Source of the DNA: Epithemia pelagica
Taxonomy: Eukaryota; Protista; Bacillariophyta
Length of the DNA stretch: 64,000 bases
Direction: 5' to 3'
Assembly (NCBI GenBank): GCA_946965045.2
Contig: OX337240.1
Coordinates: forward strand, 3,162,001-3,226,000
Positions 31,774 through 54,964 of the stretch are shown here, one piece after another (the stretch's first letter is position 1; every line of letters starts with the position of its first letter). The notes below the pieces were generated by a model. That model saw only the letters and a program-made list of their open reading frames with translations. It made no database searches and was not told the DNA's origin. The position numbers and the translations under genes were made by a program.

Positions 31774-32413
31774 CGTCTAAGGGCAGCGTCACGCGCCCCC
31801 AAAACGCACACCCCATACGCGCCGTCGGCATGCGCCATTTTTCGTACCCGGTTTTTTTATACGGATTTACACCATTTTGACTAATCCCCCCCACCATCAC
31901 GCACATACAACATCATACACATTCACGGCGACCCTATCTTCCACGCACGCACACTCCCATCTTCCACGCACAGAGAACTTACCTTCTAAGCACACTGACC
32001 TTGCCCTCCACGTCCAAAACACTCTGAACACAAAGTACCAACCTCATCAGAACAAGGCATCTATACACCCTCTCCACAGGTGCAATAACACAAGGGCAAA
32101 CCCCCAATCTCTCCTATCCCATTCTCCAATGACACCAGCGGAAGCCACTCACCTTTTGCATCCCATGCTCCGAAAGCACCAGCGGAAGCCACACACCATT
32201 AGCATCCCATGCTCCGAAAGCACTGGTAGAAGCCACCCACCTTTTGCATCTCAGGCACCGAAAGCACCGGCAGAAGCCACCCACCTTTTGCATCTCAGAC
32301 TCCAAAAGCACCAGCAGAAGCCACACACTTATGGTAACTCATTTCACAACACAATCGATACCATCCACAGAAGAATGTGAAAACATGCACAGAAGCTAAT
32401 GAAGAGATACTAT

Positions 32414-34741
32414 TTAAAAAAACCAGAGTCTGTGCTTCCTCCGCTTTTTCTGCTGCGGTTGATCTTGATCAGCACTGTCCACATATCCCATCCTCTCCCG
32501 ATGTTTCTTAAGAAGATTCTCCATGAACACATTTTGTCCCTGAAACAGTCCATCAACTGATACATATTCTCGATCATCCCTCACCTTCTGCTGCAATTCA
32601 TCAAGACGATCAAGGCCAATATCACTCATACCACGTCCCTTTTTGTTTGCACAACCTGAATACTTGTATTGTTCTACTCCATCTGTATCAATGTCCTCAT
32701 TAATTTGGTGCGCTTGACACCAAGCAGGATCTTCTTTGTACAACTTTTGTTTGAACTCTTGTCTGCTCCTCAGAGCCCATGCATCCCATGAATCTTCAAG
32801 AGCCAAGAGAATGAAAGCTTCATCACTCGTAGTAAACTTACTCATCGCTTCCTTCCATATTGCTTGCTTTTGTGCTTCTGGTGTATTAGCTGTAATATCT
32901 TGATTAATGATATCTCTCACCATTCCATCTCCATAAACCGACCCCCCAAATACTTCAAACATGAAAACATAAGCATCATTGTCTCCATTCACTCCTCTCA
33001 TTTGCATCATCTCTTCAAGACTTGGCATAGGACCTAGATTTTCATCGTCAACCAATAACTTAGGGAATTGTCGCCGAACAATTCCACCACCATGTGTTCT
33101 CCATAGATTTAACGAGAAATGTTCTGCCAGGCAGGAAGGCTCATGTTAGAGCAAAACTTTCCACAAGAATGAGAACAAGATAGCACCAAGACAGTACCAA
33201 CTTACTCATGAACCTGAACCTTAGCGATTGTAGAACATTTGATCTCTTGCGTCTGAATTCTTTCCTCAAATGGGGGGAATACCTTTCCCACCACTTTGCC
33301 TTAGCCACATCACCAATAATCTTTTCTCGTTCGAAATACGCCTTGAAGTGATCCTTCCCCAAATGCCATAATCCATTATCATCTGCATCACAATCATCGG
33401 CAAGTGAGAAATACTTCACGTACCTCCAAGCAACATCAGGCACAAAAGTCTGGAACTCATCTGTACGACAAGCTAGGGGTAGATCCTTGTATTTGCTCCT
33501 GCTCTTTCTTTGCTGTTCTCTCTTTCTTTCCCTCTTGTATTCTCTCCTTCTTTCCCTCTCACCAGACGTTGCATTAGCCCCAGAACTCTGACCATCACTA
33601 GTACCATAGATAGATGATGCAACCATTGAGCTATCGCCTCCGACTTCCATGGCTACAAGAGATGATGACGACCAAGAGAGATCAGAAAGTGAGGAAACAT
33701 CATCCATCCAGAAGTCCACATCTTTTTCGATTGTACATTTCCAAACCCACATCAACCCAGATTAGAGTTCCACTCTAACCAGTCAATACCGATAGGGCAC
33801 AAACAAAACAAAGGAAGTACACATTACTTACAAACGCGACTGACTCCTCCGCCACCACCACCACCACCACCCATAACCTCTTCCATAATATTTTCAACAT
33901 CTTGGTGCGACATTACAGTCACACCACCATTGTCATTAGCTGCGCACTCAATATTATTTGTATCCATATGGTGATGAGTTTGCTGTGGTTGGTGAACACC
34001 AGCGCCTCCTTGCATCAGAACGCCCCCATTGGGTGGGTATGGGACAGACATCATCTGCTGTTGTGGGTATCCTTGATGCACCATAATACCAGTTCCTTGT
34101 TGTGGATAAATCGTAGATGATGACGCCGCCGGGAAATGATGATGTTGTTGCCCCCCAAGAGGAGCTTGGGAATAATTGAACTGTGTATGGACCTGATGTT
34201 GTTGTTGCCCTTGAGGAAGAAATGACAACACCGATGGATTTGGTTGCTGGTGAGGATAAGGATGGGTATGATTCGGATATGGAGCAACTCCATTCGCATT
34301 ATAAGGAACTCGCTGACCATGGTCGACTCTATTCATAACAGCAGTATTGTGTTCGGATTCCATAGGTGCTCCTGTATTAGTAACACCACGGGTTCCTGTA
34401 CAGCTCATGGTACTACCTTGGTCCTGGGATTCGTTGGATGAAGCTCCCCGTCCTCCTCTTTCCTGATATATTACCTGACTCTTTTCAGATACGGATCCTG
34501 AATCCTCTTGGTTACGGTCATCATTGCTATTCTTCTTGTTGACATCTATGATCGTTATTTCTTCGTCGTCTGTTTCATCATCGGTACTGCTTTCTCCAAC
34601 ATCTTTGCCACCAGATAAACCATGGAACGCTGAATTCTTACTGTTTTGGTTGTCCTTTTTATCTTGCTTTGGATCACCACAGCGTTGGCTTCCTTGTTTT
34701 CTATTCTTGGTCCCCTGGTTTATTTCAGAAGGGGGCGACAT
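32414..34741 (-). CDS. Three-exon accessory protein of the Plavaka-like element (exons 34741-33832, 33721-33206, 33123-32414; about 711 aa)
   Basis: GT-AG introns 33722-33831 and 33124-33205 join the three listed ORFs in frame. Q/H-rich N-terminus; C-terminal FTTSDEAFILLALEDSWDAW motif; head-to-head with the transposase. Confidence 0.6.
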
Positions 34742-35175
34742 GACAAGAAGAGTATACCTGATATAAGAAGTGTTGACAATGCAATGAGTTTTGGGTGCAA
34801 CAAGAGGAGAATGTTATGCCAATCCGTTTTCATTGAGGTCTTACCTTTCGACTATCAACTTTCAAAAGTCGAGCCGTTTGTTCCGAGTACACCCGGTTTT
34901 TTTTGAATTGAACCAAATCGACAGGCGACAATTATACATTCAAACGACCAATGCCACATGGGCATTTGTGTTCGTTCCGATCCCATGTACCGATAGACTC
35001 ATAGTTTATGTAGAATAGTATGGGTGGATGGGCGGGGGGGTGGGGGTAAACCATATCCATCCACAACCAATGAAAAAGCGAGCCGGGCGACCATAAAATC
35101 GAAACCATTCGTGTCAATCGTCACATTAGCAATGATTCTCATTCCACAAAGACTAAGGACCACAAAACCAATACC

Positions 35176-38100
35176 ATGGGCCGTCCTTGTAAACCAAGGT
35201 ATTTAAGAAATAAACCTTCCGTCATCAAAGATCAATGGGTAGGCGAAGATCCAAATGCGAGTACAGGTGGTTCCATTCTTCCATGTCGTAAATGTAGAAA
35301 TTGTCATGTATTATTCCACGTCTCCGGGATCTTCCAACATGAAAAGGTTTGTAGCACCAAAAGAGAAAACGGCACTTTGGTCTCACATGCATTGGAGCAC
35401 GAATCGTCCATGATATGCCACGAAACTGCTGGTGTCGAGAACAACACCTCTCATGATAAAGATCAGGGAAATCATTTAGAAAATGGAGGAACCGATGATA
35501 GTGCTGTAGGGATTTCAGAAAATGGAGTAACCGACGATGGTGCTGTAGGGATACCCTGGGCGGACAATCGAGAAGATGAGGAAAGAGAGGATCTGCAACC
35601 CACTACACAAAAACAACCCATCGTGAGACAGCCATGTCGGAATAGTACAAATATTGCTCATTCCTTGCTGTCATCTGAGAATGAGGAAGAATCAGATGAG
35701 GACCAAGAAGAGGGACCATCAGCAGATCATGATGATGGGCTCCAACAAAATGTCGATGACAATGAGGATGTCCAAGGCAAAGGTTCATCCAGTGATGACC
35801 ATGTTATCGATGAAAACTCAAAAGACAATCCTTTGGAATTTCCAGTGTATCTTGAACAAAATGGACTCCGATTTTCCGAAGATGACAAGGCTTTATTGAG
35901 GTTGGCCATACTCCTCCAGAATGCTGGGTGTCCGAAGTTCATGTTCGATGCCATTTTGGCATGGATTGATTATACTAACGAGTGTTGTGGCTCACGTTTT
36001 TTCAATAAAAAACATCCACGGCGAAAGGGATTCATGGCGAAATTCGAAAAAAGAGGTTTCGATTTCCCCAAACCAAAGATTGTCACCGTCCCAATGGAAG
36101 TTACAACCAAAAAGGATATAATCGTTCCAGACAGTGAGAAGTCCGTTGATACCGTTATATTTGATTTTGTGCATCAACTTCGACGTGTCTTGCAAGATCC
36201 TGAAGCCACTTCCAAGGATAAAACAATATTATGTGATGACGACCCGTATCGCCCTTATACACCGAATAAATGTCTCAAAAACATACAAGATGGCCATGTT
36301 TTCCAACGTACCGTACGGAAATACAGACATGACAACGATACTTTCGTTGTTGGTTTATTGTCTTATATGGATAAGACACACGCGACAGGGGATGGTCGCT
36401 TTAATGCGGAACCAGTTGTTATGGTACCTTCATTTTTGACGATGTCTGAAATGCGAAAACCGAATAGACAAATCATCTTAGGGTTGATCACAGATATGGA
36501 ACGGAAGTCATCTGCGGCCAAATACATCTTGGATAGGGGGTCCCCCTGTCGGAATTATCATGCACAGCTCTCGCGAATACACCAAGCTCTTTTGAAGATA
36601 CAGAATCGAGGTGGATTGTGGATGCGATTACGGATCCATGGGATCGAGAAGGTGGTGAGATTAGTGTTACCCGTGATCATGATAAAGGGAGATGCGAAGT
36701 CACAAGATAACATCGCAGGACGATATGCATCTCATCATCAAAGTGTTGGCCGGCTTGTTTGGCAGTGTGATTGCACACCTCGGGAGTCTAGATACCCATG
36801 GTCCACATGCAACTACCTCTTCAAAAACCCTATTCATTTCAGAAGCCTCCGTGTGCTTGGTTTAGATAAACCATCAGGAAACCCAATAGTTATCGATTCT
36901 GGACAACCCGGCATAGATGATCCGAGAGAGGATCCTTGGAGAGAACCTGTGAACAATTCCAAGAAAATTTTACATCAGATTGGACAATACCCAGTGAACA
37001 ACATCTACAACCATTTGTATTTGGGTGAGGGTGTTAATAAAACACATGGGATTTTTACCGCGGCATGTTGTGATGTATTACATACTTTGAAATCGGGGAT
37101 CATGAAATATATCATGACTGATTTCTTTGCTCTGATGACAATGAGAGAAAAAGCCATGTTTGATTTCTTGTACAGCTCTTTCTTCCAAGCCAACCGGCAG
37201 TCGGTATTCTCTTATTCTTCTAGTTGGGGGTACCCCAGAACATCCTTCTCTGCAGGTATCAGTAATGTTACAAAGGTAACAGCCAATGAATGGGTTGGTA
37301 TTATGTTTGTCTCAGCCGCTTTGTGTGTTTCTGTTCGTGGTCATCTTATTTTCGCTTCGACTATGGCGGAGAAATGGAAAAAAGTAGTTGCAGAGTGGAA
37401 ACAATGGTGTAAAGAAGAAGAAGAGAGACGAAAGAAAAAGGAAGAAGAGAAAGAACGGAAGAGAAAGAAAAATGAATTAGAAAAAAAAAGAAAAAACGAC
37501 AACGAATGGGCGCTGGACAAAACAACGTATCCACTACCAACAATAAACGTCAACGACAATCGAAAAAAAACCCGGTTGTACACCACAGTATCGCTGATGC
37601 TTCATCCGATTCGGATGAGAATGACTCACCTGTGGATGATAGTAACGAAGAAATAACCACAAATATCAACGACAATCTGCCCGTTCATGTACAGGAAAAT
37701 GAAGATTACCAATATTGTGAACCTGACATTGAGGTACAGGTTACGAGCGAAACAGTATTCGACGATGACCCTGTGGCATATGCATCGATCTGGGATGAAG
37801 GTGAACGGGAACCATATCTGGATTTCCTCTTCCTGTTTGAGACAATACTCTGTTTCAACAGCTGGACAAGGATGGATAGATTTTGGGATAGCGACCCACG
37901 TTCTCCTGCCGCGAAGGAAACAGCGCGACGATCAGTTGAATCTGTCAAGATAATGATGGATGGTATACGGCGGTATGCACCACGATTGGATAAAAAAGGG
38001 AAACTGATGTGCAATGGTTGGATGATCCCAAAATACCACAACTTGGTACATATAGTTCGACAGGTGTCCAATTTCGGCCCAGTTAAAATATCCGACACTG

Positions 38101-39305
38101 AATCAGAGGAGAGTAACCACAAAGAAATTGTCAAACTGAATGCCAAAACAGTACAAAAGCGGGGTAAGGGTGTCTTCGACAGTCAACTTGGTGATAACAT
38201 ATGGCAGATGCAGGCATGGGATCTGCTCTGTAAAGCATCAGGGATCAAACAAGATGACGTGGAGCTACTAAAAAATGGTCAATCTCCAACCATTGTGGCA
38301 AGGAAAAAAAGAAGTCAAGTGTATCATAGTCATGAGAATGATGACGAGGACGGTGAAGAAGATAGATGTAAATTCAAGGGGCGAGGGACAACAATACAAA
38401 TCCAATTGGTCAGATCTGGACGGACAGAGAGCCCCGTGGTCAAGTGTACTTACAAGTATATTTCGAAAACAAATACCGGTATGATCCTCCCAAAAGTAAT
38501 CCTTGACTTCCTGGTGAAACATGCAAGTGCACTCTTCACACAAATGAATATTATACAACAGAATGACACAAGTGATTACATCATGATCCATGGGTGTACA
38601 GAGGTCAAATTCAGGGACGAAAACATAGGTGGTATCCGATGTCATCCTAATTACCAAAGTGAGGGTCCTTGGAGAGACTGGGTGAAAGCATGGATCCCAC
38701 GACACCAGCGAACACCATTCACTGACACTGCAACAGGTAATCAGGGAACAGACAATATCTTGGTACTCTGTCAGGTTTTATGCTTCATACGCAGACCATG
38801 GGAACAACGGGAAAGTGCTGGTCACATGCAAGAACAGGGAAATGATGCTCGTACATCAAGAATCCACCAAGAAAAACCGAGAGATGTCACACATGCTTTA
38901 CTACGAACCACTTATCGTCGTAGTGACAAGGATAAAGAGAAGTCCTCCGTCCTTTTCATTCGATGGAGCAAGGCCTTTACCCGGAATTCCCGTGTTCCCG
39001 ATCTTGTATTGGTTCCTATCACCAATATAGTTGAATTGGTAGGAGTGATCGATGAAAACCCGGAAATGATCCAACACCGAGATAAGGTACCGGAATACCT
39101 GCATTCTGATGCGGAAAGAGAAATATTGCTTGAATATACTCGGAATCACAGGAACTATTCCGATATTGTATGGGAGGTACTTCCTGCCAGTAAATGGGCC
39201 AATGAGTTCAATGACTCAGCAAGTGATTCGTTGAGAGCAAGATATACATCATCATCAGATCCTTCACAAACAACAACAACAGATCGTAACACTGCTGGAT
39301 CATGA
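35176..39305 (+). CDS. Plavaka-type (CACTA-like) transposase, split by a -1 frame change at the A9 run 37481-37489
   Basis: LLSYMDKTH, RNYHAQL, LPVIMIKGDAKSQDNIAGRY, WQCDC, CCDVLHTLKSGIMKY, PKYHNLVHIVRQVSNFGP..DTESEESNHKEIVK, CHPNYQSEGPWRDWV. Confidence 0.8.
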
Positions 39306-39701: not shown

Positions 39702-40742
39702 ATGTTGAGCAATCCATACAAAAAACCACGCACCATGACGAACCCATACAACAAACGCCGAAAACCACAAAGTACCAAACCACAAAACAAGGGGGTACTT
39801 AGTGAAAGCCGTGGAAACAATCTTCATCCAGAAGAAACCCAGTTCCAAAATGACGGCGACATCACATTTCTCGAGGATTTATTTCAATTGAGAGAAGAGA
39901 AATTCCAGAAAGAGAATAAAGGACATCACAAAAATAACAACAGCAACCACGTCGGCGAATTGGTACCACGAGTAGTAGATGACAGCTCTCCTGAACCAGG
40001 TATATCCGTCGAAGGGCATCACGAGAAAACAGAGCAGCCAAAGAAAACAGAGACTCCTGGTAACGTTGTTGTACCACCATCCATTCCCGATACAACTATC
40101 GTTCCTCATACTAATCCCAAGAAAACGGTCATTCGCAATCCATATGCGGTCAAAAGCCGTATCATTGACCCCTCTGTGGTCACTGCGAAATTTAAGACAA
40201 TACCATTGGCTCCAGAATCACCGAGTTATTCTGATCGAGTTGGTGACCGAGATGCAGACTTTCACCCTGAAGTGGTTAAGTTCACCAGACTTACCAACGA
40301 GGTATTGGGTTCTACAGAGAATATAGCAGATGCCATTTGTCCAGTTTGTTTGTTTCAAGATAACCCAACAACCGATCGGTATTTAACAGGAAAATTCTGG
40401 CATCCTTTTGGTACTACTCACCGGTGCCGTGACCATTGTTACGGTTGTGGGGTACATTGTGATGTATGCAAAACAGGTGGCAATGAATACAAATGCCGGC
40501 AATGCATTTTCGACCACGATGGGAAACTCCATGATAAACTTGTGGATCGCACATGTACTTATATTCCAATCGTATGTAAGGGTTGCCTCCGACCATGCAA
40601 TTCAATGGCTATGAACTCGTGTATCACGGACCAAAAGTCTTGTTGCAGACCATACCAGTGTCGCGTTGTCGATGTCTCAAACTTCCATGGACATGGAGCA
40701 AAGACACCCTTCTATAACTTGAATCGCTCCAAATTTCGGTAG
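39702..40742 (+). CDS. Cys-rich hypothetical protein whose 3' end is the first unit of the 170-bp satellite
   Basis: 346 aa; three NPY motifs; CPVC...CYGCGVHCDVC...CRQC...CKGC. Confidence 0.55.
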   Translation: MLSNPYKKPRTMTNPYNKRRKPQSTKPQNKGVLSESRGNNLHPEETQFQNDGDITFLEDLFQLREEKFQKENKGHHKNNNSNHVGELVPRVVDDSSPEPGISVEGHHEKTEQPKKTETPGNVVVPPSIPDTTIVPHTNPKKTVIRNPYAVKSRIIDPSVVTAKFKTIPLAPESPSYSDRVGDRDADFHPEVVKFTRLTNEVLGSTENIADAICPVCLFQDNPTTDRYLTGKFWHPFGTTHRCRDHCYGCGVHCDVCKTGGNEYKCRQCIFDHDGKLHDKLVDRTCTYIPIVCKGCLRPCNSMAMNSCITDQKSCCRPYQCRVVDVSNFHGHGAKTPFYNLNRSKFR

Positions 40743-43700
40743 AGACACTTGGGATATCATAGGCATGAATGTCATAGGCTCTGAACTCGTCTATCGCGGA
40801 CCAAAAGTCTTGTTGTAGACCATACCAGTGTCGCGTTTTCGATGTACCAAATTACCATGGACATGGAGCAAAGACACCCTTCTATAACTCGAAGCGCTCC
40901 AAATATTGGTAAAGACACTTGGGGTATCATAGGCATGGATGTCATAGGCTCTGAACTCGTCTATCGCGGACCAAAAGTCTTGTTGTAGACCAAACCAGTG
41001 TCGCGTTGTCGATGTCCCAAATTACCATGGACATGGAGCAAAGACACCCTTCTATAACTCGAAGCGCTCCAAATATTGGTAAAGACACTTGGGGTATCAT
41101 AGGCATGGATGTCATAGGCTCTGAACTCGTCTATCGCGGACCAAAAGTCTTGTTGTAGACCATACCAGTGTCGCGTTGTCGATGTCCCAAATTACCATGG
41201 ACATGGAGCAAAGACACCCTTCTATAACTTGAATCCCTCGAAATAATGGTAGAGACACTTGGGGTATCATAGGCATGGACGTCAATGGCTCTGAATTCGT
41301 GTATCGCGGACCAAAAGTCTTGTTGTAGACCATACCACTGTCGCGTTGACGATGTCCCAAATTACCATGGACATGGAGCAAAGACACCCTTCTATAACTT
41401 GAATCGCTCCAAATATTGGTAGAGACACTTGGGGTATCATAGGCATGTATGTCATAGGCTCTGAACTCGTGTATCGCAGACCAAAAGTCTTGTTGTAGAC
41501 CATACCAGTGTCGCGTTGTAGATGTACCGAACTTCCATGGACATGGAGCAAAGACACCCTTCTATAACTTGAATCGCTCCAAATATTGGTAGAGACACTT
41601 GGGATATCATAGGCATGGATGTCATAGGCTCTGAACTCGTCTATCGCGGACCAAAAGTCTTGTTGTAGACCATACCAGTGTCGCGTTGTCGATGTCCCAA
41701 ACTTCCATGGACATGGAGCAAAGACACCCTTCTATAACTTGAATCCCTCGAAATAATGGTAGAGACACTTGGGGTATCATAGGTATGGACGTCAATGGCT
41801 CTGAACTCGTGTATCGCGGACCAAAAGTCTTGTTGTAGACCATACCAGTGTCGTGTTGTCGATGTTCCAAATTACCATGGACATGAAGCAAAGACACCCT
41901 TCTATAACTTGAAGCGCTCCAAATATTGGTAGACACACTTGGGGTATCATATGCATGTATGTCATAGGCTCTGAACTCGTGTATCGCAGACCAAAAGTCT
42001 TGTTGTAGACCATACCAGTGTCGCGTTGTAGATGTACCGAACTTCCATGGACATGGAGCAAAGACACCCTTCTATCACTTTAATCGCTCCAAATATTGGT
42101 AGAGACACTCGGGATATCATAGGCATGAATGTCATAGGCTCTGAACTCGTCTATCGCGGACCAAAGGTCTTGTTGTAGACCATACCAGTGCCGCGCTGTA
42201 GATGTACCGAACTTCCATGGACATGGAGCAAAGACACCCTTCTATAACTTGAATCGCTCCAAATTTCGGTAGAGACACTTGGGATATCATAGGCATGAAT
42301 GTCATAGGCTCTGAACTCGTCTATCGCGGACCAAAAGTCTTGTTGTAGACCATACCAGTGTCGCGTTTTCGATGTCCCAAACTTCCATGGACATGGAGCA
42401 AAGACACCCTTCTATAACTTGAATCCCTCGAAATAATGGTAGAGACACTTGGGGTATCATAGGTATGGACGTCAATGGCTCTGAACTCGTGTATCGCGGA
42501 CCAAAAGTCTTGTTGTAGACCATACCAGTGTCGTGTTGTCGATGTTCCAAATTACCATGGACATGAAGCAAAGACACCCTTCTATAACTTGAAGCGCTCC
42601 AAATATTGGTAGACACACTTGGGGTATCATATGCATGTATGTCATAGGCTCTGAACTCGTGTATCGCAGACCAAAAGTCTTGTTGTAGACCATACCAGTG
42701 TCGCGTTGTAGATGTACCGAACTTCCATGGACATGGAGCAAAGACACCCTTCTATCACTTTAATCGCTCCAAATATTGGTAGAGACACTCGGGATATCAT
42801 AGGCATGAATGTCATAGGCTCTGAACTCGTCTATCGCGGACCAAAGGTCTTGTTGTAGACCATACCAGTGCCGCGCTGTAGATGTACCGAACTTCCATGG
42901 ACATGGAGCAAAGACACCCTTCTATAACTTGAATCGCTCCAAATATTGGTAGAGACACTTAGGATATCATAGGCATGAATGTCATAGGCTCTGAACTCGT
43001 GTATCGCGGACCAAAAGTCTTGTTGTAGACCATACCAGTGTCGCGTTGTCGATGTCCCAAACTTCCATGGACATGGAGCAAAGACACCCTTCTATAACTT
43101 GAATCGCTCCAAATTTCGGTAGAGACACTTGGGATATCATAGGCATGAATGTCATAGGCTCTGAACTCGTGTATCGCGGACCAAAAGTCTTGTTGTAGAC
43201 CAAACCAGTGTCGCGTTTTCGATGTCCCAAATTACCATGGACATGGAGCAAAGACACCCTTCTATAACTTGAATCGCTCCAAATATTGGTAGAGACACTT
43301 GGGGTATCATAGGCATGGACGTCATAGGCTCTAAACTCGTCTATCGCGGACCAAAAGTCTTGTTGTAGACCATACCAGTGTCGTGTTGTCGTTGTTCCAA
43401 ACTTCCATGGACATGGAGCAAAGACACCCTTCTATAACTTGAAGCGCTCCAAATATTGGTAGAGACACTTGGGGTATTATAGGAATGGACGTCATAGGCT
43501 CTGAACGCGTGTACCATGGACCAAAAGTTTTGTAGTAGACCATACTGGTGTGGTGTTGCCGTTGTACCAAACTTCCATGTACATGGAGCAAAGTCACCCT
43601 TCTATAACTTGAATCGCTCCAAATTTCAATAGAGACACTTGGGGTATCATAGGAATGGATGTCATAGTCTTTGATCTCGTCTATCGCGGACCAAAAGTCT

Positions 43701-44290
43701 CGTTGTAGGCCATACCAGTATCGCGTTTTCGTTGTCTCAACCTTCCATGAGGGGTATGGAGCAACAACACCCTTCTATGACTTGAAGCGCTCCAAAATTC
43801 GGTACAGACACTTGCGGTATCATAGGCACGGACGTCATAGGCGCTGAACTCGTCTATCATTGACGTAAATTATTGTTGTAGACCACACCGGTGCGGTGTT
43901 GTCGTCGTCCCAATCTTCCATAGATTTTTTGGAACAAAGACATTTTTCTTTTCATCTAATCGACCCAGGTCTTGGTACATATCCTCGGGACATCATAGCC
44001 ATGTGTACCATAGGCTCTGATCTCATGTGCCGTCAAGACAAAGGCTTGCAATAGATTAGATCGGTTTGGCGTTGTCGTCGTGCCAAAATTGTATGGACAT
44101 GGAGCAAAGAGATCCTTCTCTTCATGGAATCGGTCCAGATTTTGGAAGAGACCCATAGTGTCTCATTTTTATGGATACCATAGGATCTGATCTCGTGATC
44201 AGATACGAGAAAGGCTTGCAATAGACCATACCGATATAGCGTTGGCCTTGACATCGTCCAAAAATTTCGTACGCTCATTTCATCCTCCAT
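40627..44290. repeat. 170-bp tandem satellite: 19 in-register unit starts (40627-43687) followed by about 3 degenerate units
   Basis: cg(g/c)accaaa(a/g)gtcttgttgtagaccataccagtgtcgcgttg... recurs every 170 bp; 4-unit (680-bp) higher-order duplication 41622-42301 / 42302-42981. Confidence 0.95.
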
Positions 44291-44479: not shown

Positions 44480-45355
44480 ATGGAAGACTCGTCTTGGTTG
44501 AATACTGTTGCAATATGGAATCTCATCTCGAATACAAGATTTGATGTTGAAACTTCGTTTTGTCTTCGTAGCAGCGATAGGAATGTTGTTCTCACTGAAG
44601 ATGTTGCAGCGGCAGCCGAAGGAATCAAAAACGAATTCAAGGATCTTGTAGACAAGATTATTAATCACGAGGGACGACTTGATGTGATTTCCATTATGAA
44701 TGGTAATCAAGAGGGATATACAGAAGAGCACCAGTGTCAGATGGGCACATGGGCAGACAGACCGGAATTCCTTGACGGACCCTTCATCTGGAAACAAAAC
44801 TTCCTCGAGACATGTCTTGTTTGCGGTAAATTCACCTGTAATCAACGGGCAACAATATACACATGCAAACATTGTTTCCGTCCTTTACAAGTACCTGGGT
44901 CGTCTTCATCTTGTGATACCACTTGTGCAAAGACTCCCTGTACTTCATCCATGAACATGTCCTTCGTATGGGAGTTCTGTATGACTTTAAGAGAGGCATT
45001 CCAAGCGTGGTTAGACTTCCACAAGTTTGGAAAAAACAGAAAGATTCCCTTTTTTGAATATATCCCAGCCGAAACTTGTGGCATCTTGACAAAAACGGTC
45101 GGTAAAGTATGGAGAGAAAAATTGGAGCCTTATTACGACGAGGATACCAAGTGGCGTAGTCCATCTCATTTCATTCACACCGAGAAACAATGGGCATTGT
45201 GGCTGATTTCTTCACCACCTGGTTGCTCTTTTCGCAACTATATGCCTATTTTTACTGCATGTTATCACATAGCACAGGAAAATCCAAAGAAACACGCTGC
45301 TGGTGTACCACACCAGAGTGCTCGTAAGAAGCAAAAGACGTGGAATGCTCCTTGA
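44480..45355 (+). CDS. Hypothetical protein with CxxC clusters (Plavaka cargo)
   Basis: 291 aa; CLVCGKFTC...CKHC...CDTTC; convergent with the TET-like gene. Confidence 0.5.
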   Translation: MEDSSWLNTVAIWNLISNTRFDVETSFCLRSSDRNVVLTEDVAAAAEGIKNEFKDLVDKIINHEGRLDVISIMNGNQEGYTEEHQCQMGTWADRPEFLDGPFIWKQNFLETCLVCGKFTCNQRATIYTCKHCFRPLQVPGSSSSCDTTCAKTPCTSSMNMSFVWEFCMTLREAFQAWLDFHKFGKNRKIPFFEYIPAETCGILTKTVGKVWREKLEPYYDEDTKWRSPSHFIHTEKQWALWLISSPPGCSFRNYMPIFTACYHIAQENPKKHAAGVPHQSARKKQKTWNAP

Positions 45356-45394
45356 ATTTGTTTTTCCTTGGTGATGAATGCATCCAGAAAGAAT

Positions 45395-47383
45395 TTATAA
45401 TATTCCGCTACGAATGCCTTGAACCGTTTTGGTTATACCATGGTCCTCTCTTGTTTCGTTGACAGTTGCATTCATAGACCTGGAACTTACTGCCCAAAAC
45501 CAACTAATAGTGTCGTTCTTCATGTTCCCATCTGTATGTTGTCTTTGTGTGTGTATTGACGTTCCATGCCGGATCACACGTCCATCCCATAGAACCGAAA
45601 CCCCATGAAATAGTTGTATACAAAGACCATGGTATGTAGTACCATCATACTCCACAAGAATATTCGGCAAAACAAAGAACCAATTTTGGGAGTCACCTGG
45701 GATTGTCTCTGTCCAGATTGCGAATGAAACAGAACCATCGTGAACATCATAGTGTGTCGTGTTCATGAGGTTCAAACTCAGGGTAATGGCTGAGGTCATA
45801 CCTCCGACTCTTCCTCCGAATTCACTAGGCATTTCTTCGCCAGCTGAATCTTCTAGATACCGGAATGTTGGAATCACCCCAGGATATTCGCGTTCACAGA
45901 ACCTTTTTGCCGCTGTACTTATTTTCGGCAGTATCATCGATAATGTCTTGTCCTTTGTAAATAATTTCTCGGAAACGAAAGTAGAACCGTTTCCTCTTGC
46001 CGCAGTATTACCAACAGTAGTCATAGATCCTAAGTCTCCCTTATTACATCTGGCATTGGCCGCCTTTCTCAGAGACCCAGTACGTGTAAATTCCCTTGCT
46101 CTGTGGTGTAATAGGTCCAACAACGTCTGGTCTTTCCGTAACAGGGATGTCACTCGAATGTAACTAAGTGACTCTGGTCTCCCATCATTTCGGCGTGTCC
46201 GAACAATGAAAGTAATGTTTCCCCGAATACGATGGTCGTATACCAGTGGCCTTGGGTGTGTACCGGACGACATTTGCAACCATAGGTTTCGATGCAAAGC
46301 ACCACTAACATATCTCCGACTCCCTTTCTTATCTGAGTCATTCCTGTTTATAATCAGCCTTGTTCGATATTGTTCCCGTGACATGTGATGTGTCATCGAC
46401 TGTTTATTCCCTGGCTTTTCGATCTTTCCCTTGTCATCGAGGTACACGTCAGGAGGTAAAAGTGGGCTCCCATCCTCCACATCTGACCATTGGTAACATT
46501 CCTTCACAGTTTTGTCATTATTAGTAAGATGTTCACCCCAATCTAGACTCCAACAACGATGAATTTTTTTCAAGAATGCATTACTTGCAGGTTGGCCATC
46601 TTTGTGTCGCAGACGTAACCAAGACAACGGTAGTGGGACTGATGACGATGTGATGTTGGACGACCTTGATAGTTCTTGAAATTGACGCACACATGTATAA
46701 AAAACCCCAGCCAAAGGGAAGAGGATAATGATATCTCTGAAGAGGTGATCATTTTTGTCAAGACATAAATTTTTGTTAGTCCGAATCATCATGACAGGAT
46801 CTTCGAATATAGAGGACGACACATGTGTTGTCTTTTTCCTGATTTCTCTATATCTTGTCCTCGACAAGGTACATTCCAATATGAATGCATTGTGGATCGT
46901 TTTAGTTACAAGACCCACCGGGATTTGAGTTACAATCATAGGACAACATTCTGGTATAATGTTCGAATGACTGACAACGTCATCTCTTGTCTCCACAACA
47001 TCATCCATAGCCTTGTTGTATATTTCTGGGATACGTGCAAAGACACTCGGGATATCTTTCATATCGACCTTCCGTTGTATCATCTCTTTTTCGAACGACA
47101 AACCAAAACAATCTTGATCGTCGTAACTTCCAAAGCAACGCTGCAGTAGATGCGATAGCATCCTTATTCGATCGATGTCCTTGTCCAAGACAAAGTAGCA
47201 CATTCTTTCGTGTGCACTTTCGTTCCGATGCGACATGGCGACCACTGTTTCACTTATACGTTGCGTTTTCTTCTTTTCGTACTTGGCATATGTCTCCTGT
47301 GTACATGTGAGTCTCGAAATCGTCTGATCCGATGCCATATCTTCGAAAGTGGGACGAATATGTTTCTTCTTTATGGATGTCAC
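45395..47383 (-). CDS. TET/JBP-like 2OG-Fe(II) dioxygenase
   Basis: KGDLGSMTTVG; LNLMNTTHYDVHDGSVSFAIW (HxDxxD); NWFFVLPN; LFHGVSVLWDGRVIRHGTS (distal His). Confidence 0.7.
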   Translation of the reverse strand: MTSIKKKHIRPTFEDMASDQTISRLTCTQETYAKYEKKKTQRISETVVAMSHRNESAHERMCYFVLDKDIDRIRMLSHLLQRCFGSYDDQDCFGLSFEKEMIQRKVDMKDIPSVFARIPEIYNKAMDDVVETRDDVVSHSNIIPECCPMIVTQIPVGLVTKTIHNAFILECTLSRTRYREIRKKTTHVSSSIFEDPVMMIRTNKNLCLDKNDHLFRDIIILFPLAGVFYTCVRQFQELSRSSNITSSSVPLPLSWLRLRHKDGQPASNAFLKKIHRCWSLDWGEHLTNNDKTVKECYQWSDVEDGSPLLPPDVYLDDKGKIEKPGNKQSMTHHMSREQYRTRLIINRNDSDKKGSRRYVSGALHRNLWLQMSSGTHPRPLVYDHRIRGNITFIVRTRRNDGRPESLSYIRVTSLLRKDQTLLDLLHHRAREFTRTGSLRKAANARCNKGDLGSMTTVGNTAARGNGSTFVSEKLFTKDKTLSMILPKISTAAKRFCEREYPGVIPTFRYLEDSAGEEMPSEFGGRVGGMTSAITLSLNLMNTTHYDVHDGSVSFAIWTETIPGDSQNWFFVLPNILVEYDGTTYHGLCIQLFHGVSVLWDGRVIRHGTSIHTQRQHTDGNMKNDTISWFWAVSSRSMNATVNETREDHGITKTVQGIRSGIL

Positions 47384-47504: not shown

Positions 47505-50500
47505 CTAATAATATAGATCAGACTTGCCTTTTCGCTTCTGTGTTACTGATCGTGACAGTAGAAGATGCAGTTTGGTCTCTCCTATTCTTCTCCTTTGTTG
47601 TTTTTTACTCATGAAACGGAGAGTTTCCAACGGTACACGACCCCATGCTGTCTCTGGAAATACAGGGACCGGTCTGTAGAGACCACGATGTTCCTCTTTT
47701 GACACGCCAACTTCTTCAACTGAACCATCATGTACATTGGTGTACGTAATTGAAGCAATATCTCCGTTGCACAAAGGGCAACTCTCGTTCATTTCAGGAG
47801 GTGTCGATTTCTGTTTCCCCATAGGAACTTGTTTTTCGGTGGTAAGGACTTGACCAAGACACACCCGACAAAACTTGTGCCCGCATCTCTCGATCCGACA
47901 GTCGTTAGGACGCTGTCCATGGCATATGGCACAATATTGTTCGGAGTCTTCATCATATTCATCTAGGACGATTGTCTTGTCTTTCTTCGCGATTAATTCT
48001 GTCTCATGTAGATCGTGTGGTATTAGCTCAGCATGCATATGACCGCATATGGAACAAAATCGATTCTTCATCGAATTCCGGATGAAAGTACATGTTGGAC
48101 AATGATAATGAGGACAGTTGGAGGTTTCTTGCCTTGTCCAACTCACGATAGAAAAGGTCTGACTTCTATCCAGATCCTTTTTAAGCAATGAAGTCCCACA
48201 AGTGGAACAGAGTGCCTCTTTCTGATCTTCATCGTTCAATGTTCGTACCAGATCCAAAAATCGCCGATCTTCGTGAAGTCGTTCGAGCGCCTTGTCCGCT
48301 TCTGTAATCTCTTGTATCACTTTAATGTCCTCGAATCGTTCATCGTCGGAATCCAGCATATCTTCCATTACCTCCCCTCGATCTTTCCCTTCCATTATAA
48401 ACCGGCGACTGCGTTTGATCCTTGGACGTGTATCGTCATTAACGTCCTTGAAACATACACGCAGAGTCGAATCACGTTTCGCTTTATTGATAGCCGTACT
48501 CACGATATGATTGCAGGCCTTGTGACATTCTCGCCTACACGATGGCAATTCTTGAGCCCATTTCCCCATCATCTGATCACAGGACATATTAGGGGACGCC
48601 TTTGACAGGATCTCGTCGATCACACATATGATTGATACTTGGGGAAGCGTACACGCACTTGGTGCCACCGGATTCGGATACTTCTTATAAATGAATCTCC
48701 AGTCACATCCAACGAGCTCTTCCTTTATATCAACGCTCAAGAATGATTGGATTTTCTTTTCGTCGTCCAATAGCCTTAGTTTCCGTAGACATCGAATCAC
48801 TGTAGGCCTCCACGAGCGAATATCCCTTGTCGATAATGGATCGAATATCAACACTTCTCTTTGATGTGCTTGTAAGAGGATTAAGACGGGATCAAAAGCT
48901 TCATACTTGGTAGTGACGACGACCAATGTAGTATCGGAAGATGACGAACTCAAATCCATTGCAGTCGTTGTGTCCATTCTCAGACTATCTTCGTCAATTT
49001 GCTCAAAGCAAACGGACTTGTTGTGCCATTTATGAACCACCAGCACAAGCATCGACCTGAATATGAGGGGAGGGATCCCCTTAAACTCAGTCGTCTCTTG
49101 AGTATTCGTCCGTAGCAAAAGGTTTCGTCTGTACTGGCGATGTGGGACAAAAAGGACGTCCATTTTCCCATTGTCATGTTGTAGAGAACCATTCTTGTTG
49201 GTACAGCAAGCACAGGTAAAGACAAATCGCAAAACAACTTCATGGATGCTTCCCTTACGTCGAACGGCACTTTCTTTACAGAGATCCCAAGCTTCATTGA
49301 TCGCTGACATCGACTGTTTGAGGGACCAGTTAGCCATATGAATCAAACGGTCGTTAGTGAAAGATGCAAGGTCGTCTGATGGACCAGGTTTATTCTTGAG
49401 AGGAGGTGGTTTCTTTGGTATTCCTTTAGGTTTGTCGCTACCGTGGTCGACATGTGATTTACTTTCCAACAGACCCACCTTTGATTGAGAGGAAGTTTTT
49501 TTTGTCGTCGCTTGTTTTCCTTTTTGTGGTTTCTTTTTCAATGCAAGAGTATCAAAAATGGAACTCCGATCCTCCTCAGTCGCTGACAGAGACTGAGATG
49601 GTGATTTGCTCTCGTTATTTGAAACAGTGAAAATGGTAGAACTTGTTGCACCATCACATCTACTGTCTGACGCTCGTTTACGGCGTTTCCTGTCTTGAGA
49701 TCGTTGTTCATGTCGCCCCTTCTGATACTCCTTCGTCTTTGTAGCGTATTCCCGTTCCATCGTCTGGTAATATGAAATTAGAACCGCCAAATTGGAATAG
49801 TCGTTCGCGGGATACTTAGCAGCTCTTGGTATGTCAAAATAAGGACGAAACCAGCAATCAGGAAGTGTAAGGGCTAATGCTTTTTCAACATCGACTCCTT
49901 CCATTTCATAGGAGTCAGATTCCAATACCCGATAGACAGCTGCCATATGTTGAACGCTCCAAACCATTTCTCGGACTGCTATTGTTCTGTCTTTCCGAAA
50001 CTTCGATCTATCAGACGTCATGTAGTCCAATATTTTTGCAGCCACGACATTAAGCCGTCTCTCCATCGAATACGAGTTGAGGACAATATCAGCGAGCATA
50101 GGATGGGCTCCAAGAAACACCTTGAGGGATCGAGTAAAGCTTGCGCTCGACTTTGATCTTGTCGTTGACGGGAATTCCTTGTCCCACAGACGAAGTGCGT
50201 CTCCATATAGAGTTTGTTCGAATAGGTCGATTCCTGGTGAAATAAAACTACCAGCTCCGTCACTCTTGTTTCCCTCTTGTTGTTCTTCGATCGTCTCTAC
50301 AAGTCTCAGTATCTTCGGGAAACAAACAGCAGCATGCGAGGCGATATCACTGAAAATACTTGATCCACAGCGCAAGAGGGATACGAATATGGTTTCACCT
50401 CCATATGTAGTGGAGAAATCTGTCCAATTATCAGTGTTGGAATAAACAGAACGATACCACTCGATTGTATATTCATAACATATCAAGTCTGGGAAATATC

Positions 50501-50528
50501 GATCGGAATCTTCTACCGAATCAGCCAT
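47505..50528 (-). CDS. 1007-aa protein with two C-terminal RING-like fingers
   Basis: CSTCG...CPHYHCPTC...CSIC and CAICH...CGHKFCRVCL...CPLC; central VLILLQAHQREVLIFDPL only weakly resembles Ulp1-type peptidases. Confidence 0.7.
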   Translation of the reverse strand: MADSVEDSDRYFPDLICYEYTIEWYRSVYSNTDNWTDFSTTYGGETIFVSLLRCGSSIFSDIASHAAVCFPKILRLVETIEEQQEGNKSDGAGSFISPGIDLFEQTLYGDALRLWDKEFPSTTRSKSSASFTRSLKVFLGAHPMLADIVLNSYSMERRLNVVAAKILDYMTSDRSKFRKDRTIAVREMVWSVQHMAAVYRVLESDSYEMEGVDVEKALALTLPDCWFRPYFDIPRAAKYPANDYSNLAVLISYYQTMEREYATKTKEYQKGRHEQRSQDRKRRKRASDSRCDGATSSTIFTVSNNESKSPSQSLSATEEDRSSIFDTLALKKKPQKGKQATTKKTSSQSKVGLLESKSHVDHGSDKPKGIPKKPPPLKNKPGPSDDLASFTNDRLIHMANWSLKQSMSAINEAWDLCKESAVRRKGSIHEVVLRFVFTCACCTNKNGSLQHDNGKMDVLFVPHRQYRRNLLLRTNTQETTEFKGIPPLIFRSMLVLVVHKWHNKSVCFEQIDEDSLRMDTTTAMDLSSSSSDTTLVVVTTKYEAFDPVLILLQAHQREVLIFDPLSTRDIRSWRPTVIRCLRKLRLLDDEKKIQSFLSVDIKEELVGCDWRFIYKKYPNPVAPSACTLPQVSIICVIDEILSKASPNMSCDQMMGKWAQELPSCRRECHKACNHIVSTAINKAKRDSTLRVCFKDVNDDTRPRIKRSRRFIMEGKDRGEVMEDMLDSDDERFEDIKVIQEITEADKALERLHEDRRFLDLVRTLNDEDQKEALCSTCGTSLLKKDLDRSQTFSIVSWTRQETSNCPHYHCPTCTFIRNSMKNRFCSICGHMHAELIPHDLHETELIAKKDKTIVLDEYDEDSEQYCAICHGQRPNDCRIERCGHKFCRVCLGQVLTTEKQVPMGKQKSTPPEMNESCPLCNGDIASITYTNVHDGSVEEVGVSKEEHRGLYRPVPVFPETAWGRVPLETLRFMSKKQQRRRIGETKLHLLLSRSVTQKRKGKSDLYY

Positions 50529-50639: not shown

Positions 50640-53600
50640 CCTGGAGGGTCTTGGTCGATAGGGATGGAGGAGTGAGGGATATGGGTGTACCAACTTGATG
50701 TCTCGGTCCTTCCAGTCAAGAATCAGTAGCAAATACAACAATCCAATAGGGTCTTGGTCGATAGAGATAGAAGATAGAAGTATGGGGGCGCAACAACTTG
50801 GTGTCTCGGCCCTTCAACAGAACCACCAATCAAGATATAGCAATCCAATGGAGTCTTCTTGGTCGATGTAGATGAAGGAGGGATGGAGAGGGGTGCACCA
50901 ACTTGGTGTCTCGGCCCTTGTTCCAATAGGGAAGGAGTAGCAACACAGCAATCCAACAAGGTCTTGGTCGATGGTGATGGAGGAGTGAAAATCGGGTGCA
51001 CCAACTTGGTGTCTTGATCCTTGTTCCAATCGAGAAGGAGTGGCAACACAGCAATCCAACAGGGTCAAGGTCGATGGAGATGGAGGGGTGAAGGAAATGG
51101 GTGCACCAACTTGGTGTCTCGGCCCTTATTCCAATCAGGAAGGAGTAGCAACACAGCAATCCAACAGGGTCAAGGTCGATGGAGATGGAGGGGTGAAGGA
51201 AATGGGTGCACCAACTTGGTGTCTCGGCCCTTGCTCCAATCGGGAAGGAGTAGCAACACGGCAATCCAACACGGTCTTGGTCGATGGAGATGGAGGGGTG
51301 AAGGAAATGGGTGCACCAACTTGGTGTCTCAGCCCTTGTTCCAATTGAGAAGGAGTAGCAACACAGCAATCCAACGGGGTCTTGGTCGATGGAAATGGAG
51401 GGGTGAAGGAAATGGGTGCACCAACTTGGTGTCTCAGCCCTTGTTCTAATCAAGAAGGAGTAGCAACACAGCAATCCAACGGGGTCTTGGTCGATGGAAA
51501 TGGAGGGGTGAAGGAAATGGGTGCACCAACTTGGTGTCTCGGCCCTTATTCCAATCAGGAAGGAGTAGCAACACAGCAATCCAACAGGGTCAAGGTCGAT
51601 GGAGATGGAGGGGTGAAGGAAATGGGTGCACCAACTTGGTGTCTCAGCCCTTGTTCCAATCGGGAAGGAGTAGCAACACAGCAATCCAACAGGGTCTTGG
51701 TTCATGGAAATGGAGGGGTGAGGGAAATGGGTGCACCAACTTGGTGTCTCGGCCCTTGTTCCAATTGAGAAGGAGTAGCAACACAGCAATCCAACAGGGT
51801 CTTGGTCGATGGAGATGGAGGGGTGAAGGAAGAGGGTGCACCAACTTGGTGTCTCAGCCCTTGTTCCAATCGGGAATGAGTAGCAACACAGCAATCCAAC
51901 AGGGTCTTGGTTGATGGAAATGGAGGGGTGAAGGAAATGGGTGCACCAACTTGGTGTCTCGGCCCTTGTTCCAATCGAAAAGGAGTAGCAACACAGCAAT
52001 CCAACAGGGTTTTAATCGATGGAAATGGAGGGGTGAAGGAAATGGGTGCACCAACTTGGTGTCTCGGCCCTTGCTCCAATTGAGAAGGGGTAGCAACACA
52101 GCAATCCAACAGGGTCTTGGTCGATGGAGATGGAGGGGTGAAGGAAGAGGGTGCACCAACTTGGTGTCTCAGCCCTTGTTCCAATCGGGAAGGAGTAGCA
52201 ACACAGCAATCCAACAGGGTCTTGGTTCATGGAAATGGAGGGGTGAGGGAAATGGGTGCACCAACTTGGTGTCTCGGCCCTTGTTCCAATTGAGAAGGAG
52301 TAGCAACACAGCAATCCAACAGGGTCAAGGTCGATGGAGATGGAGGGGTGAAGGAAATGGGTGCACCAACTTGGTGTCTCGGCCCTTATTCCAATCAGGA
52401 AGGAGTAGCAACACAGCAATCCAACAGGGTCAAGGTCGATGGAGATGGAGGGGTGAAGGAAATGGGTGCACCAACTTGGTGTCTCGGCCCTTGCTCCAAT
52501 CGGGAAGGAGTAGCAACACAGCAATCCAACAGGGTCAAGGTCGATGGAGATGGAGGGGTGAAGGAAATGGGTGCACCAACTTGGTGTCTCGGCCCTTGCT
52601 CCAATCGGGAAGGAGTAGCAACACGGCAATCCAACACGGTCTTGGTCGATGGAGATGGAGGGGTGAAGGAAATGGGTGCACCAACTTGGTGTCTCAGCCC
52701 TTGTTCCAATTGAGAAGGAGTAGCAACACAGCAATCCAACGGGGTCTTGGTCGATGGAAATGGAGGGGTGAAGGAAATGGGTGCACCAACTTGGTGTCTC
52801 AGCCCTTGTTCTAATCAAGAAGGAGTAGCAACACAGCAATCCAACGGGGTCTTGGTCGATGGAAATGGAGGGGTGAAGGAAATGGGTGCACCAACTTGGT
52901 GTCTCGGCCCTTATTCCAATCAGGAAGGAGTAGCAACACAGCAATCCAACAGGGTCAAGGTCGATGGAGATGGAGGGGTGAAGGAAATGGGTGCACCAAC
53001 TTGGTGTCTCAGCCCTTGTTCCAATCGGGAAGGAGTAGCAACACAGCAATCCAACAGGGTCTTGGTTCATGGAAATGGAGGGGTGAGGGAAATGGGTGCA
53101 CCAACTTGGTGTCTCGGCCCTTGTTCCAATTGAGAAGGAGTAGCAACACAGCAATCCAACAGGGTTTTAATCGATGGAAATGGAGGGGTGAAGGAAATGG
53201 GTGCACCAACTTGGTGTCTCGGCCCTTGTTCCAATTGAGAAGGGGTAGCAACACAGCAATCCAACAGGGTTTTAATCGATGGAAATGGAGGGGTGAAGGA
53301 AATGGGTGCACCAACTTGGTGTCTCGGCCCTTATTCCAATCAGGAAGGAGTAGCAACACAGCAATCCAACAGGGTCAAGGTCGATGGAGATGGAGGGGTG
53401 AAGGAAATGGGTGCACCAACTTGGTGTCTCAGCCCTTGTTCCAATCGGGAAGGAGTAGCAACACAGCAATCCAACAGGGTCTTGGTTCATGGAAATGGAG
53501 GGGTGAGGGAAATGGGTGCACCAACTTGGTGTCTCGGCCCTTGTTCCAATTGAGAAGGAGTAGCAACACAGCAATCCAACAGGGTCTTGGTCGATGGAGA

Positions 53601-54130
53601 TGGAGGGGTGAAGGAAGAGGGTGCACCAACTTGGTGTCTCAGCCCTTGTTCCAATCGGGAATGAGTAGCAACACAGCAATCCAACAGGGTCTTGGTTGAT
53701 GGAAATGGAGGGGTGAAGGAAATGGGTGCACCAACTTGGTGTCTCGGCCCTTGTTCCAATCGAGAAGGAGTAGCAACACAGCAATCCAACAGGGTTTTAA
53801 TCGATGGAAATGGAGGGGTGAAGGAAATGGGTGCACCAACTTGGTGTCTCGGCTCTTGTTCCAATTGAGAAGGGGTAGCAACACAGCAATCCAACAGGGT
53901 CTTGGTCGATGGAGATGGAGGGGTGAAGGAAGAGGGTGCACCAACTTGGTGTCTTTTGCCCTTTGTTCAATAGAATCCTCACCAATCCGACCGTTCAGAT
54001 CGTTGAAAATGGTCTTCTGGGATAATAGGAGGGAAGAAGCAGCGGCAATCCAGCAATCCAACCAGTTTTGGTCGATGGAAATTGATGGGAGAATGAAATG
54101 GGTGCACCAACTTGGTGTCTTCGCCCTTTT
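50640..54130. repeat. 105-bp tandem repeat, about 33 units
   Basis: gggtgcaccaacttggtgtctc(g/a)gcccttgttccaat...gcaacacagcaatccaacagggt...gatggaggggtgaaggaaat; duplicated blocks at 1365-bp offset; degenerate at both edges. Confidence 0.95.
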
Positions 54131-54436: not shown

Positions 54437-54735
54437 TGTGTTTTTTGGGGCGTTGGGGGTTGGTGTGAGTTGGATGAGGCACTCTATGACACTATCGTCA
54501 AAAAGTGATCACAAAAGTGGGAGAGTATATCTTTTGTGTGGTTGTTGTGTGAGAAAAATCTAATTTTCAGCGTTCTTCTGTGATTTTGTGTCCATTGTTC
54601 TTCGTATGTCACTGTGACGTGATTTGGTGGTGGAGGAGAAATTTGTGGGTCGCTTTTGGAGTTTACGTGCGACTGGAATACTAGGTGATATATGTGTAGC
54701 TAGTAGTTAGGTATCTAGGCAAAGGTTAGGCTCTG

Positions 54736-54916
54736 TGCACGCGTTTCCACATACAATAAACATGCTCACGCGGGTGTCAACACGTTTCACGCGTTGTCTA
54801 CACGTTTCACGCGCATTCACGCGCAATCTGGAGCGCCACGCGCTTCGTACGCGCCAAATGCGCGTGATCCGTGTTCTGGGGGTGCTGCACGCGCCTATTG
54901 GGCGTGTGTCACGCGC
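54736..54916. repeat. Subterminal CACGCG repeat cluster of the Plavaka-like element
   Basis: About 8 CACGCG copies within 180 bp of right subterminal DNA; ACGCG also at 31790-31830 near the left TIR. Confidence 0.75.
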
Positions 54917-54964
54917 CTGTTGGTGGAATTCCAGTCACTTATCTTCAAAAAACCTCCTTAGACG

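Follow-up and report, generated by a model that had tools for sequence, protein, structure and literature searches.

Ends, target site and copies of the element

The window examined here is a 64-kb stretch of the genome of the diatom Epithemia pelagica (assembly GCA_946965045.2, contig OX337240.1, positions 3,162,001 to 3,226,000). It contains an element of 23,191 bp, at 31774–54964, that carries a transposase gene, seven accessory open reading frames (ORFs) and two satellites between short terminal inverted repeats (TIRs). An initial annotation had described this element as a Plavaka/CACTA-like transposon with base-precise ends. The left TIR, CGTCTAAGG, occupies 31774–31782 on the forward strand; the right TIR, which lies on the reverse strand and reads CCTTAGACG on the forward strand, occupies 54956–54964. 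Each TIR adjoins a CG dinucleotide, at 31772–31773 and 54965–54966, respectively, so that the filled site reads GAGTTGAAC-CG, element, CG-GGGAGTCAG. Direct reading of the sequence and self-BLAST revealed an empty paralogous target site at 59571–59590, with the sequence GAGTTGAAC-CG-GGGAGTCAG: one CG, no insert and no footprint. The single CG at the empty site identifies the two CGs around the element as copies of a target-site duplication (TSD). The window contains three occurrences of the 9-mer CGTCTAAGG, whereas 0.16 would be expected. The third, at 13078, was dismissed as a chance match, its neighboring sequence being unrelated.

A 2.9-Mb contig in the same assembly (ENA ERZ21939226) encodes a protein with 99% identity to an 826-aa ORF of the element, and further copies were found by walking outward from the element genes via exact-protein look-ups. 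Three were resolved at both ends: copy 2 on ctg1362l (22,097 bp; flanks ...ATAC-TA / TA-TCGG), copy 3 on ctg1299l (22,746 bp; ...CCTC-CA / CA-CGGG) and copy 4 on ctg1347l (21,484 bp; ...TCAT-TA / TA-ACAT). BLAST homology between these and the window copy is bounded exactly by the 9-mers, beginning on the left at 31774 and ending at the right TIR. Between their TIRs, all four copies are colinear throughout, with pairwise identities of 98.7–99.2% (satellites excluded), whereas their flanks differ; the length differences arise mostly from the satellites. Three copies at unrelated loci thus confirm the element ends independently of the empty site in the window, and the coordinates first assigned to the element prove exact to the base.

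The same copies settle the length of the repeats. Since copies 2, 3 and 4 are flanked by TA, CA and TA, the TSD is 2 bp and the TIR 9 bp. This is the first of two arrangements that had been put forward initially; the other, a 10-bp TIR with no TSD, is excluded by these flanks. They likewise rule out CG as part of an 11-bp palindromic TIR, a possibility we had considered, and the CA duplication, being non-palindromic, must be a direct repeat of 2 bp. A bias toward CG targets had also been envisaged. Other copies do have the same termini and a TSD that is always 2 bp, but CG is found at one of the four sites only (CG, TA, CA, TA) and the bias is absent. We also considered a strict pyrimidine–purine target. 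It fits all four insertions of the window family, but GA and AT flanks in the related family described below break the pattern, leaving at most a weak preference.

That related family, hereafter the sister family, has the ends CATCTAAGG(A)...(T)CCTTAGATG, or CATCT..AGATG in short form. Two of its insertions were resolved at both ends: an internal-deletion derivative of 12.8 kb (L003, 6896–19657) with the TSD TG, and a full copy of 18,462 bp on ctg1341l (L009 from 6916 onward, plus L011) with the TSD GA. Across the two families, the TSD is therefore 2 bp in 6/6 fully resolved insertions. Two more left ends of the sister family are flanked by CA and AT, and the family is also present in L008 and L010. 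Comparison by BLASTP, ORF by ORF, showed that it has homologs of most genes of the window element in the same order, with one (ORF e, below) inverted.

These data bear on whether 23 kb of DNA is one transposon at all. The unusual size and the two 3.3-kb satellites are the only features that would favor several units, namely a smaller Plavaka element whose neighbors are genes and satellites of other origin, the match of the ends being a coincidence. Four colinear copies with different flanks and matching TSDs refute such an arrangement, and the sister family holds the same gene set between TIRs of its own; we give the multi-unit idea practically no credence.

The window copy is inserted in one of two near-identical, neighboring subtelomeric host units. 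The unit is ∼4.4 kb long and occurs twice, head to tail, with 184 bp between the copies and 99.5% identity; only the first copy is interrupted. By self-BLAST, the part left of the insertion (27526–31773) is 99.4–99.6% identical to 55290–59581, and the part to the right (54965–55105) is 100% identical to 59580–59720. ORFs of the host unit gave no Pfam match. The second copy of the unit stops at GACCCTA (59714–59720), where a helicase-type subtelomeric element begins; in the first copy, a different sequence follows the same CCCTA (55099–55105).

The occupied and empty sites could also mean that the second host copy once held the element and lost it precisely, or that two haplotypes were mis-assembled side by side, in which case the pair would say little about recent insertion. 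The arrangement of the host copies, adjacent and with a divergence close to that of alleles, is what such an account would predict, and the region is subtelomeric and rearranged. Moreover, the only other assembly record, the ENA contig that includes this region (L012), is byte-identical to the window, leaving the tandem host duplication without independent assembly support. Yet the empty site contains exactly one CG and no footprint, and excision of the hairpin type, as in hAT and Transib/RAG, usually leaves footprints. In either case, the element is present at one site and absent at the other with base-precise ends. Recent activity is also backed independently by the near-identity of the four copies, two of which have an intact transposase. 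We consider loss or mis-assembly improbable, and the recent mobility proposed at the outset is borne out by the near-identical copies together with the empty site.

How many copies there are can be gauged from the proteins. Clusters of the element genes at 90% identity comprise 17–26 different sequences on many contigs, and the cluster of the window-family transposase includes three that are intact at 1376 aa. Given these clusters and the identity among the four copies, the window family is young, with roughly twenty copies of 21.5–23.2 kb. At 2696 aa, P0165 (encoded on a 772,197-bp contig) is double the usual size for the transposase cluster to which it belongs, perhaps because in another copy the reading frame of the transposase continues into ORFs downstream or into the satellite. 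Most other copies of either family (L004, L006/L007, L008, L009, L010) adjoin reverse-transcriptase genes of the Copia/Gypsy type or contig ends beside helicase elements. This suggests that both families accumulate in repeat-rich or subtelomeric DNA.

The transposase and its superfamily

The transposase gene lies on the forward strand at 35176–39305. In the window copy it is split into two ORFs, ORF1 and ORF2 (35176–37656 and 37506–39305), by a frameshift: a run of adenines at ∼37481–37489 numbers nine in this copy and ten in copy 2. Copy 2 is in frame through the run but has a 19-bp deletion of its own, and in copies 3 and 4 the transposase is continuous at 1376 aa (intact versions, P0156 and P0162). 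In the sister family, the transposase is intact at 1285 aa in several copies, and its 90%-identity cluster contains 53 different sequences. It is 57% identical to the window transposase in the ORF1 segment and 44% identical in ORF2.

Because of the single-base frameshift, the window copy is probably non-autonomous. It is doubtful, though conceivable, that this copy is autonomous after all and that the run of nine adenines reflects a sequencing error at this homopolymer or that the frameshift is bypassed. Errors in homopolymer length are common in long-read assemblies, the one base is the sole defect, and none of the seven accessory ORFs is disrupted in the window copy. Still, the sequence as given splits the ORF, whereas copy 2 reads in frame through the run and copies 3 and 4 have the continuous ORF.

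Alignment of relatives points to a DDE catalytic triad of D399 (∼36370), D506 (∼36691) and E979 (∼38109). Both aspartates are invariant and the glutamate nearly so. A histidine pair, H955-x3-H959, stands just before E979, and a long insertion separates the second aspartate from the glutamate. Within that interval are two invariant cysteines, C531 and C545, with a local C-x-C at 529/531.

The initial annotation had proposed a direct search with the Pfam Plavaka model, and it failed: neither transposase ORF of the window has a Pfam match, even at an E-value of 10. A paralog with 55% identity, P0004, reaches only 17.2 bits on the Plavaka model, PF18759, against a cut-off of 26.3. More distant relatives were informative. 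An exhaustive phmmer search returned 1165 of them, mostly 1000–1400 aa in length. One, P0006, matches the window ORF with an E-value of 3.2e-24 and PF18759 with 38.9 bits, above the cut-off, and 23 of the 42 aligned relatives match PF18759 (best E-value, 4.6e-14). No other transposase family was matched.

Structure prediction led to the same clade. An AlphaFold2 model of residues 225–1035, built from 71 sequences, has a mean pLDDT (predicted local distance difference test) of 84.7. When this model was compared with the PDB using Foldseek, the top 47 matches were all RAG1, amphioxus RAG1-like protein (RAGL) or the Transib transposase of Helicoverpa (HzTransib). VIA re-alignment of the model gave Z scores of 14–17 over ∼485 residues for RAG1 and 12.7 for HzTransib, as compared to 9 for the P-element transposase, 4.8 for the domain of Metnase (mariner) and <5 for generic RNase H folds.

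From these results we conclude, with a probability of about 90%, that the element is a cut-and-paste DNA transposon of the Plavaka lineage within the CACTA/EnSpm-Mirage-Chapaev-Transib (CMCT) clade. The assignment follows from the relatives that pass the PF18759 threshold and from the predicted RAG1/Transib-like fold, not from a direct match. The identity first proposed is thereby upheld, and the match to a different superfamily that would have overturned it did not appear, Plavaka being the sole transposase family that the relatives match.

Several observations weigh against this assignment or the evidence for it. Besides the negative Pfam result, a profile of the family found nothing among the sequences of the PDB. 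The invariant cysteines are 13 residues apart, while the pattern of the CMCT clade is C(2)C. In all four copies the termini are CGTCT..AGACG, rather than the CA..TG typical of the clade, the TGT of PlavakaA or the CATCA of PlavakaB; the sister terminus, CATCT, does fit CA..TG and four of the five bases of CATCA. The transposase ORF of the window copy is broken. Finally, the empty site is a paralogous, possibly allelic or mis-assembled, copy and not the corresponding locus of another individual.

Could the element instead belong to another DDE superfamily with 2-bp TSDs, such as Tc1/mariner, PHISTA or ISL2EU (PHIS), or ESTA, and resemble Plavaka only superficially? The failed Pfam test and the atypical termini would be accounted for, and half of the window-family TSDs (2/4) are TA. 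Groups that insert specifically at TA (Tc1/mariner, PHISTA, ESTA) are nonetheless excluded by the TSDs CG, CA, TG and GA. The relatives match PF18759 only, and the predicted fold resembles RAG1/Transib far more closely than Metnase, the Z scores being 14–17 (over ∼485 residues) and 4.8. The protein, ∼1376 aa in length, likewise speaks against them, having a long insertion between the second aspartate and the glutamate and, right in front of the latter, an H(3)H motif. We regard placement in one of these superfamilies as very unlikely.

Accessory genes, subterminal motifs and satellites

Apart from the transposase, the element has seven large ORFs, which we call a to g. Pfam scans of all large ORFs in the window gave no transposase or dioxygenase match; a sub-threshold RING match was the only one. 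These ORFs had been labeled cargo. However, the sister family shares a, b, d, e, f and the N-terminal part of g, and has a positional counterpart of c. Because the set is conserved in this way, we view it as lineage-specific accessory genes and not as captured host genes.

Three accessory ORFs lie on the reverse strand to the left of the transposase gene. ORF a (32417–33028, 204 aa) has no known domain, is intact in 4/4 copies and is 35% identical to a sister-family ORF at the same position. ORF b (33144–33752, 203 aa) contains a basic region, has no known domain and is 47% identical to its sister-family counterpart. ORF c (33824–34741, 305 aa) is of low complexity and rich in Q, H and G; it is the one with a positional counterpart in the sister family. 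Judging from the gaps of 70–115 bp between them, these three may belong to a single gene as its exons.

ORFs d and e encode cysteine-rich proteins on the forward strand. ORF d (39702–40742) is 346 aa long here and 423 aa in the other three copies, and is 37% identical to its sister-family homolog; its 3′ end runs into a 170-bp satellite. ORF e (44480–45355, 291 aa) is a paralog of the C-terminal part of ORF d, with 30% identity to the sister-family ORF that is inverted there.

ORF f (45395–47383, reverse strand, 662 aa) is a candidate 2-oxoglutarate (2OG)-Fe(II) dioxygenase of the TET/JBP type. It contains the motif HYDVHD ... HG..WDGRVIRHGTS, and three parts of it (HYD, HG downstream, and RH-x-TS) do not vary among ORF f, the sister-family protein and a metagenome protein. 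Word-index searches with the whole protein and with its C-terminal region returned paralogs from the same genome and one metagenome protein, none of which carries a Pfam annotation. ORF f itself has no match at an E-value of 10 in Pfam, PF12851 and PF20515 included, and a profile of its C-terminal domain gave only chance matches in the PDB, with no TET or JBP structure among them. An AlphaFold2 model from an alignment of four sequences was unusable (pLDDT 30). A metagenome scan for relatives yielded ten loci (L013–L022, on JGI and ENA contigs) encoding proteins of 324–386 aa. These are stand-alone versions that lack the long N-terminal region of ORF f and are 31–47% identical to it in the C-terminal HxD...H domain. 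One of them, from L019, has a weak, sub-threshold match to PF20515, the Tet-like 2OG-Fe(II) oxygenase family (E-value 0.036; 14.5 bits, where the cut-off is 27). ORF f is quite probably some 2OG dioxygenase; its candidate TET/JBP-like character is read from motifs.

ORF g (47505–50528, reverse strand, 1007 aa) ends in a RING finger. The RING matches have E-values of 4e-5 to 7e-4, below the gathering score, whereas the sister-family homolog passes the RING thresholds. In the sister family, a single ORF of 1702 aa combines the RING region of ORF g with a full-length homolog of ORF f, which forms the C-terminal half of the fusion and is 43% identical to ORF f over 648 residues.

Near the ends of the element, a heptamer, CAYGCGC, recurs. 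All eight of its occurrences in the 23 kb lie within 300 bp of an end, against 0.21 expected there: two in the left subterminal region (31774–32073, at 31790 and 31829) and six in a cluster on the right (54808–54916), both annotated on the forward strand. In the sister element, 9/12 occurrences are within 300 bp of the ends. There the heptamer (L003, 6993–7130 and 19308–19442) makes up a 20-bp tandem array of 4.4 copies. From this distribution, we consider CAYGCGC a candidate binding site of the transposase.

Both satellites that had been noted initially are real. One has a 170-bp unit in 19.5 copies (40607–43921); the other has a 105-bp unit in 31.6 copies (50645–53954), with a degenerate tail that extends to 54220. 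Repeat analysis additionally detected a 44-bp minisatellite of 4.8 copies at 32116–32328. The 170-bp unit includes the 3′ coding end of ORF d, its last ∼45 codons. In light of this, and of the different lengths of ORF d here and elsewhere, the array seems to have originated from the 3′ end of ORF d and to keep remodeling it.

These features allow a working model of transposition. The transposase would bind the TIR together with the CAYGCGC motifs of the subterminal 300 bp. It would then nick at the tips of the TIRs and hairpin the flanking DNA, as might be expected from the chemistry of Transib and RAG1, and integration would proceed with a 2-bp stagger. The window copy would probably be moved in trans by intact copies such as those on ctg1299l and ctg1347l. 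As for the accessory module, comprising the RING protein, the candidate 2OG dioxygenase and the cysteine-rich proteins beside the satellites, we propose that it acts on the chromatin or DNA of the element itself. Its most likely role, on a speculative analogy with fungal Plavaka elements that carry TET and red-algal ones that carry PAG genes, is to counter silencing.

Comparison with known systems

Plavaka has been grouped with EnSpm, Mirage, Chapaev, Transib and RAG1 in the CMCT clade (Kojima 2025, PMC12730594). According to the same study, PlavakaA has a 2-bp TSD and termini TGT..ACA, PlavakaB has a 2–3-bp TSD and termini CATCA..TGATG, and some fungal PlavakaB families carry a gene for a TET/JBP dioxygenase (PMC12730594). 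In the red alga Bostrychia moritziana, giant Plavaka elements of 17.4–19.1 kb carry the accessory genes PAG1–3 (10.1101/2025.02.11.637652). That cassette includes a putative 2OG-dependent oxygenase, and tandem arrays lie beside an accessory gene (10.1101/2025.02.11.637652). Polymorphic EnSpm-Plavaka insertions have been published for Auxenochlorella, and giant repeats flanked by Plavaka for Amoebidium. The view of Plavaka as mainly fungal, from which the initial annotation started, is therefore outdated, with examples from red algae, green algae and Amoebidium in print. In the literature searched, we found no description of such an element in a diatom.

The element is thus not a new kind of transposon: 2-bp Plavaka TSDs, membership of the clade and a giant architecture with accessory genes have all been published. 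What is new is the diatom host lineage, the base-precise evidence from six insertions, and the termini CRTCTAAGG with G at position 2. The base at position 2 of the terminus is normally a critical A; CRTCTAAGG tolerates G. The accessory set is also new, consisting of RING, cysteine-rich and candidate dioxygenase proteins and showing no methylase or SET match. A tentative, rather doubtful proposal would go further: that diatoms harbor a deep giant-Plavaka lineage of their own, defined by CRTCTAAGG termini, CAYGCGC binding sites and a self-encoded module of RING E3 ligase, 2OG dioxygenase and cysteine-rich proteins that, with its cognate satellites, would alter the DNA or chromatin marks of the element and so evade silencing. 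Such a module would have arisen separately from the TET cassettes of fungi and the PAG cassettes of red algae.

The copies described here provide a base-precise, multi-copy reference for Plavaka in diatoms, which includes intact transposases, TIRs, candidate binding motifs and the length of the TSD. With it the family can be annotated across the genome, and a mini-element paired with a transposase could serve as a diatom genetic tool. The pattern of giant Plavaka elements combined with accessory genes resembling chromatin- or DNA-modifying factors and with tandem arrays is extended to a third major lineage. In addition, the RING–dioxygenase fusion of the sister family, its dioxygenase part being a candidate, gives the anti-silencing hypothesis a concrete form.

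Set against fungal Plavaka, the element shares a DDE transposase with relatives that match PF18759, a 2-bp TSD and short TIRs. It differs in the CGTCT termini of the window family, in a protein that falls below the Pfam threshold and in its diatom host. It is also far larger, with ∼7 accessory ORFs and two satellites, and its dioxygenase is a candidate only.

The giant Plavaka elements of red algae are similar in their large size and in combining a Plavaka transposase with a conserved accessory cassette. In both, one accessory protein (here ORF f, by its motif) is a putative 2OG-dependent oxygenase. Tandem arrays are a further likeness: the 170-bp array abuts and overlaps ORF d, and the space between ORF g and the right terminus holds the 105-bp array. 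In contrast, no large ORF of either family matches a PAG2-type DNA methylase (PF01555) or SET (PF00856), and the window element has RING and cysteine-rich proteins instead. Copy number differs as well, with tens of copies here as opposed to Plavaka making up one third of the genome in the red alga.

With Transib and RAG1 (PDB 6pqx, 4wwx, 6dbx and others), the predicted likeness covers the whole catalytic core (Z 12.7–17.2, 413–490 aligned residues) and includes the DDE triad, a large insertion before the glutamate and a histidine pair next to it. Sequence identity is only 10–13%, however; the TSD is 2 bp and not 5 bp, and the termini are not CAC. Unlike RAG1, the window element has neither a RAG2-like partner nor the 12/23 asymmetry.

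For plant CACTA/EnSpm, the ORFs of the window gave no Pfam match to Transposase_21 or Transposase_24. The TSD is 2 bp here and 3 bp there, and the termini are CGTCT and CACTA, respectively. Yet the two belong to the same clade and share an organization in which short TIRs are accompanied by repeated subterminal motifs and a second element-encoded protein.

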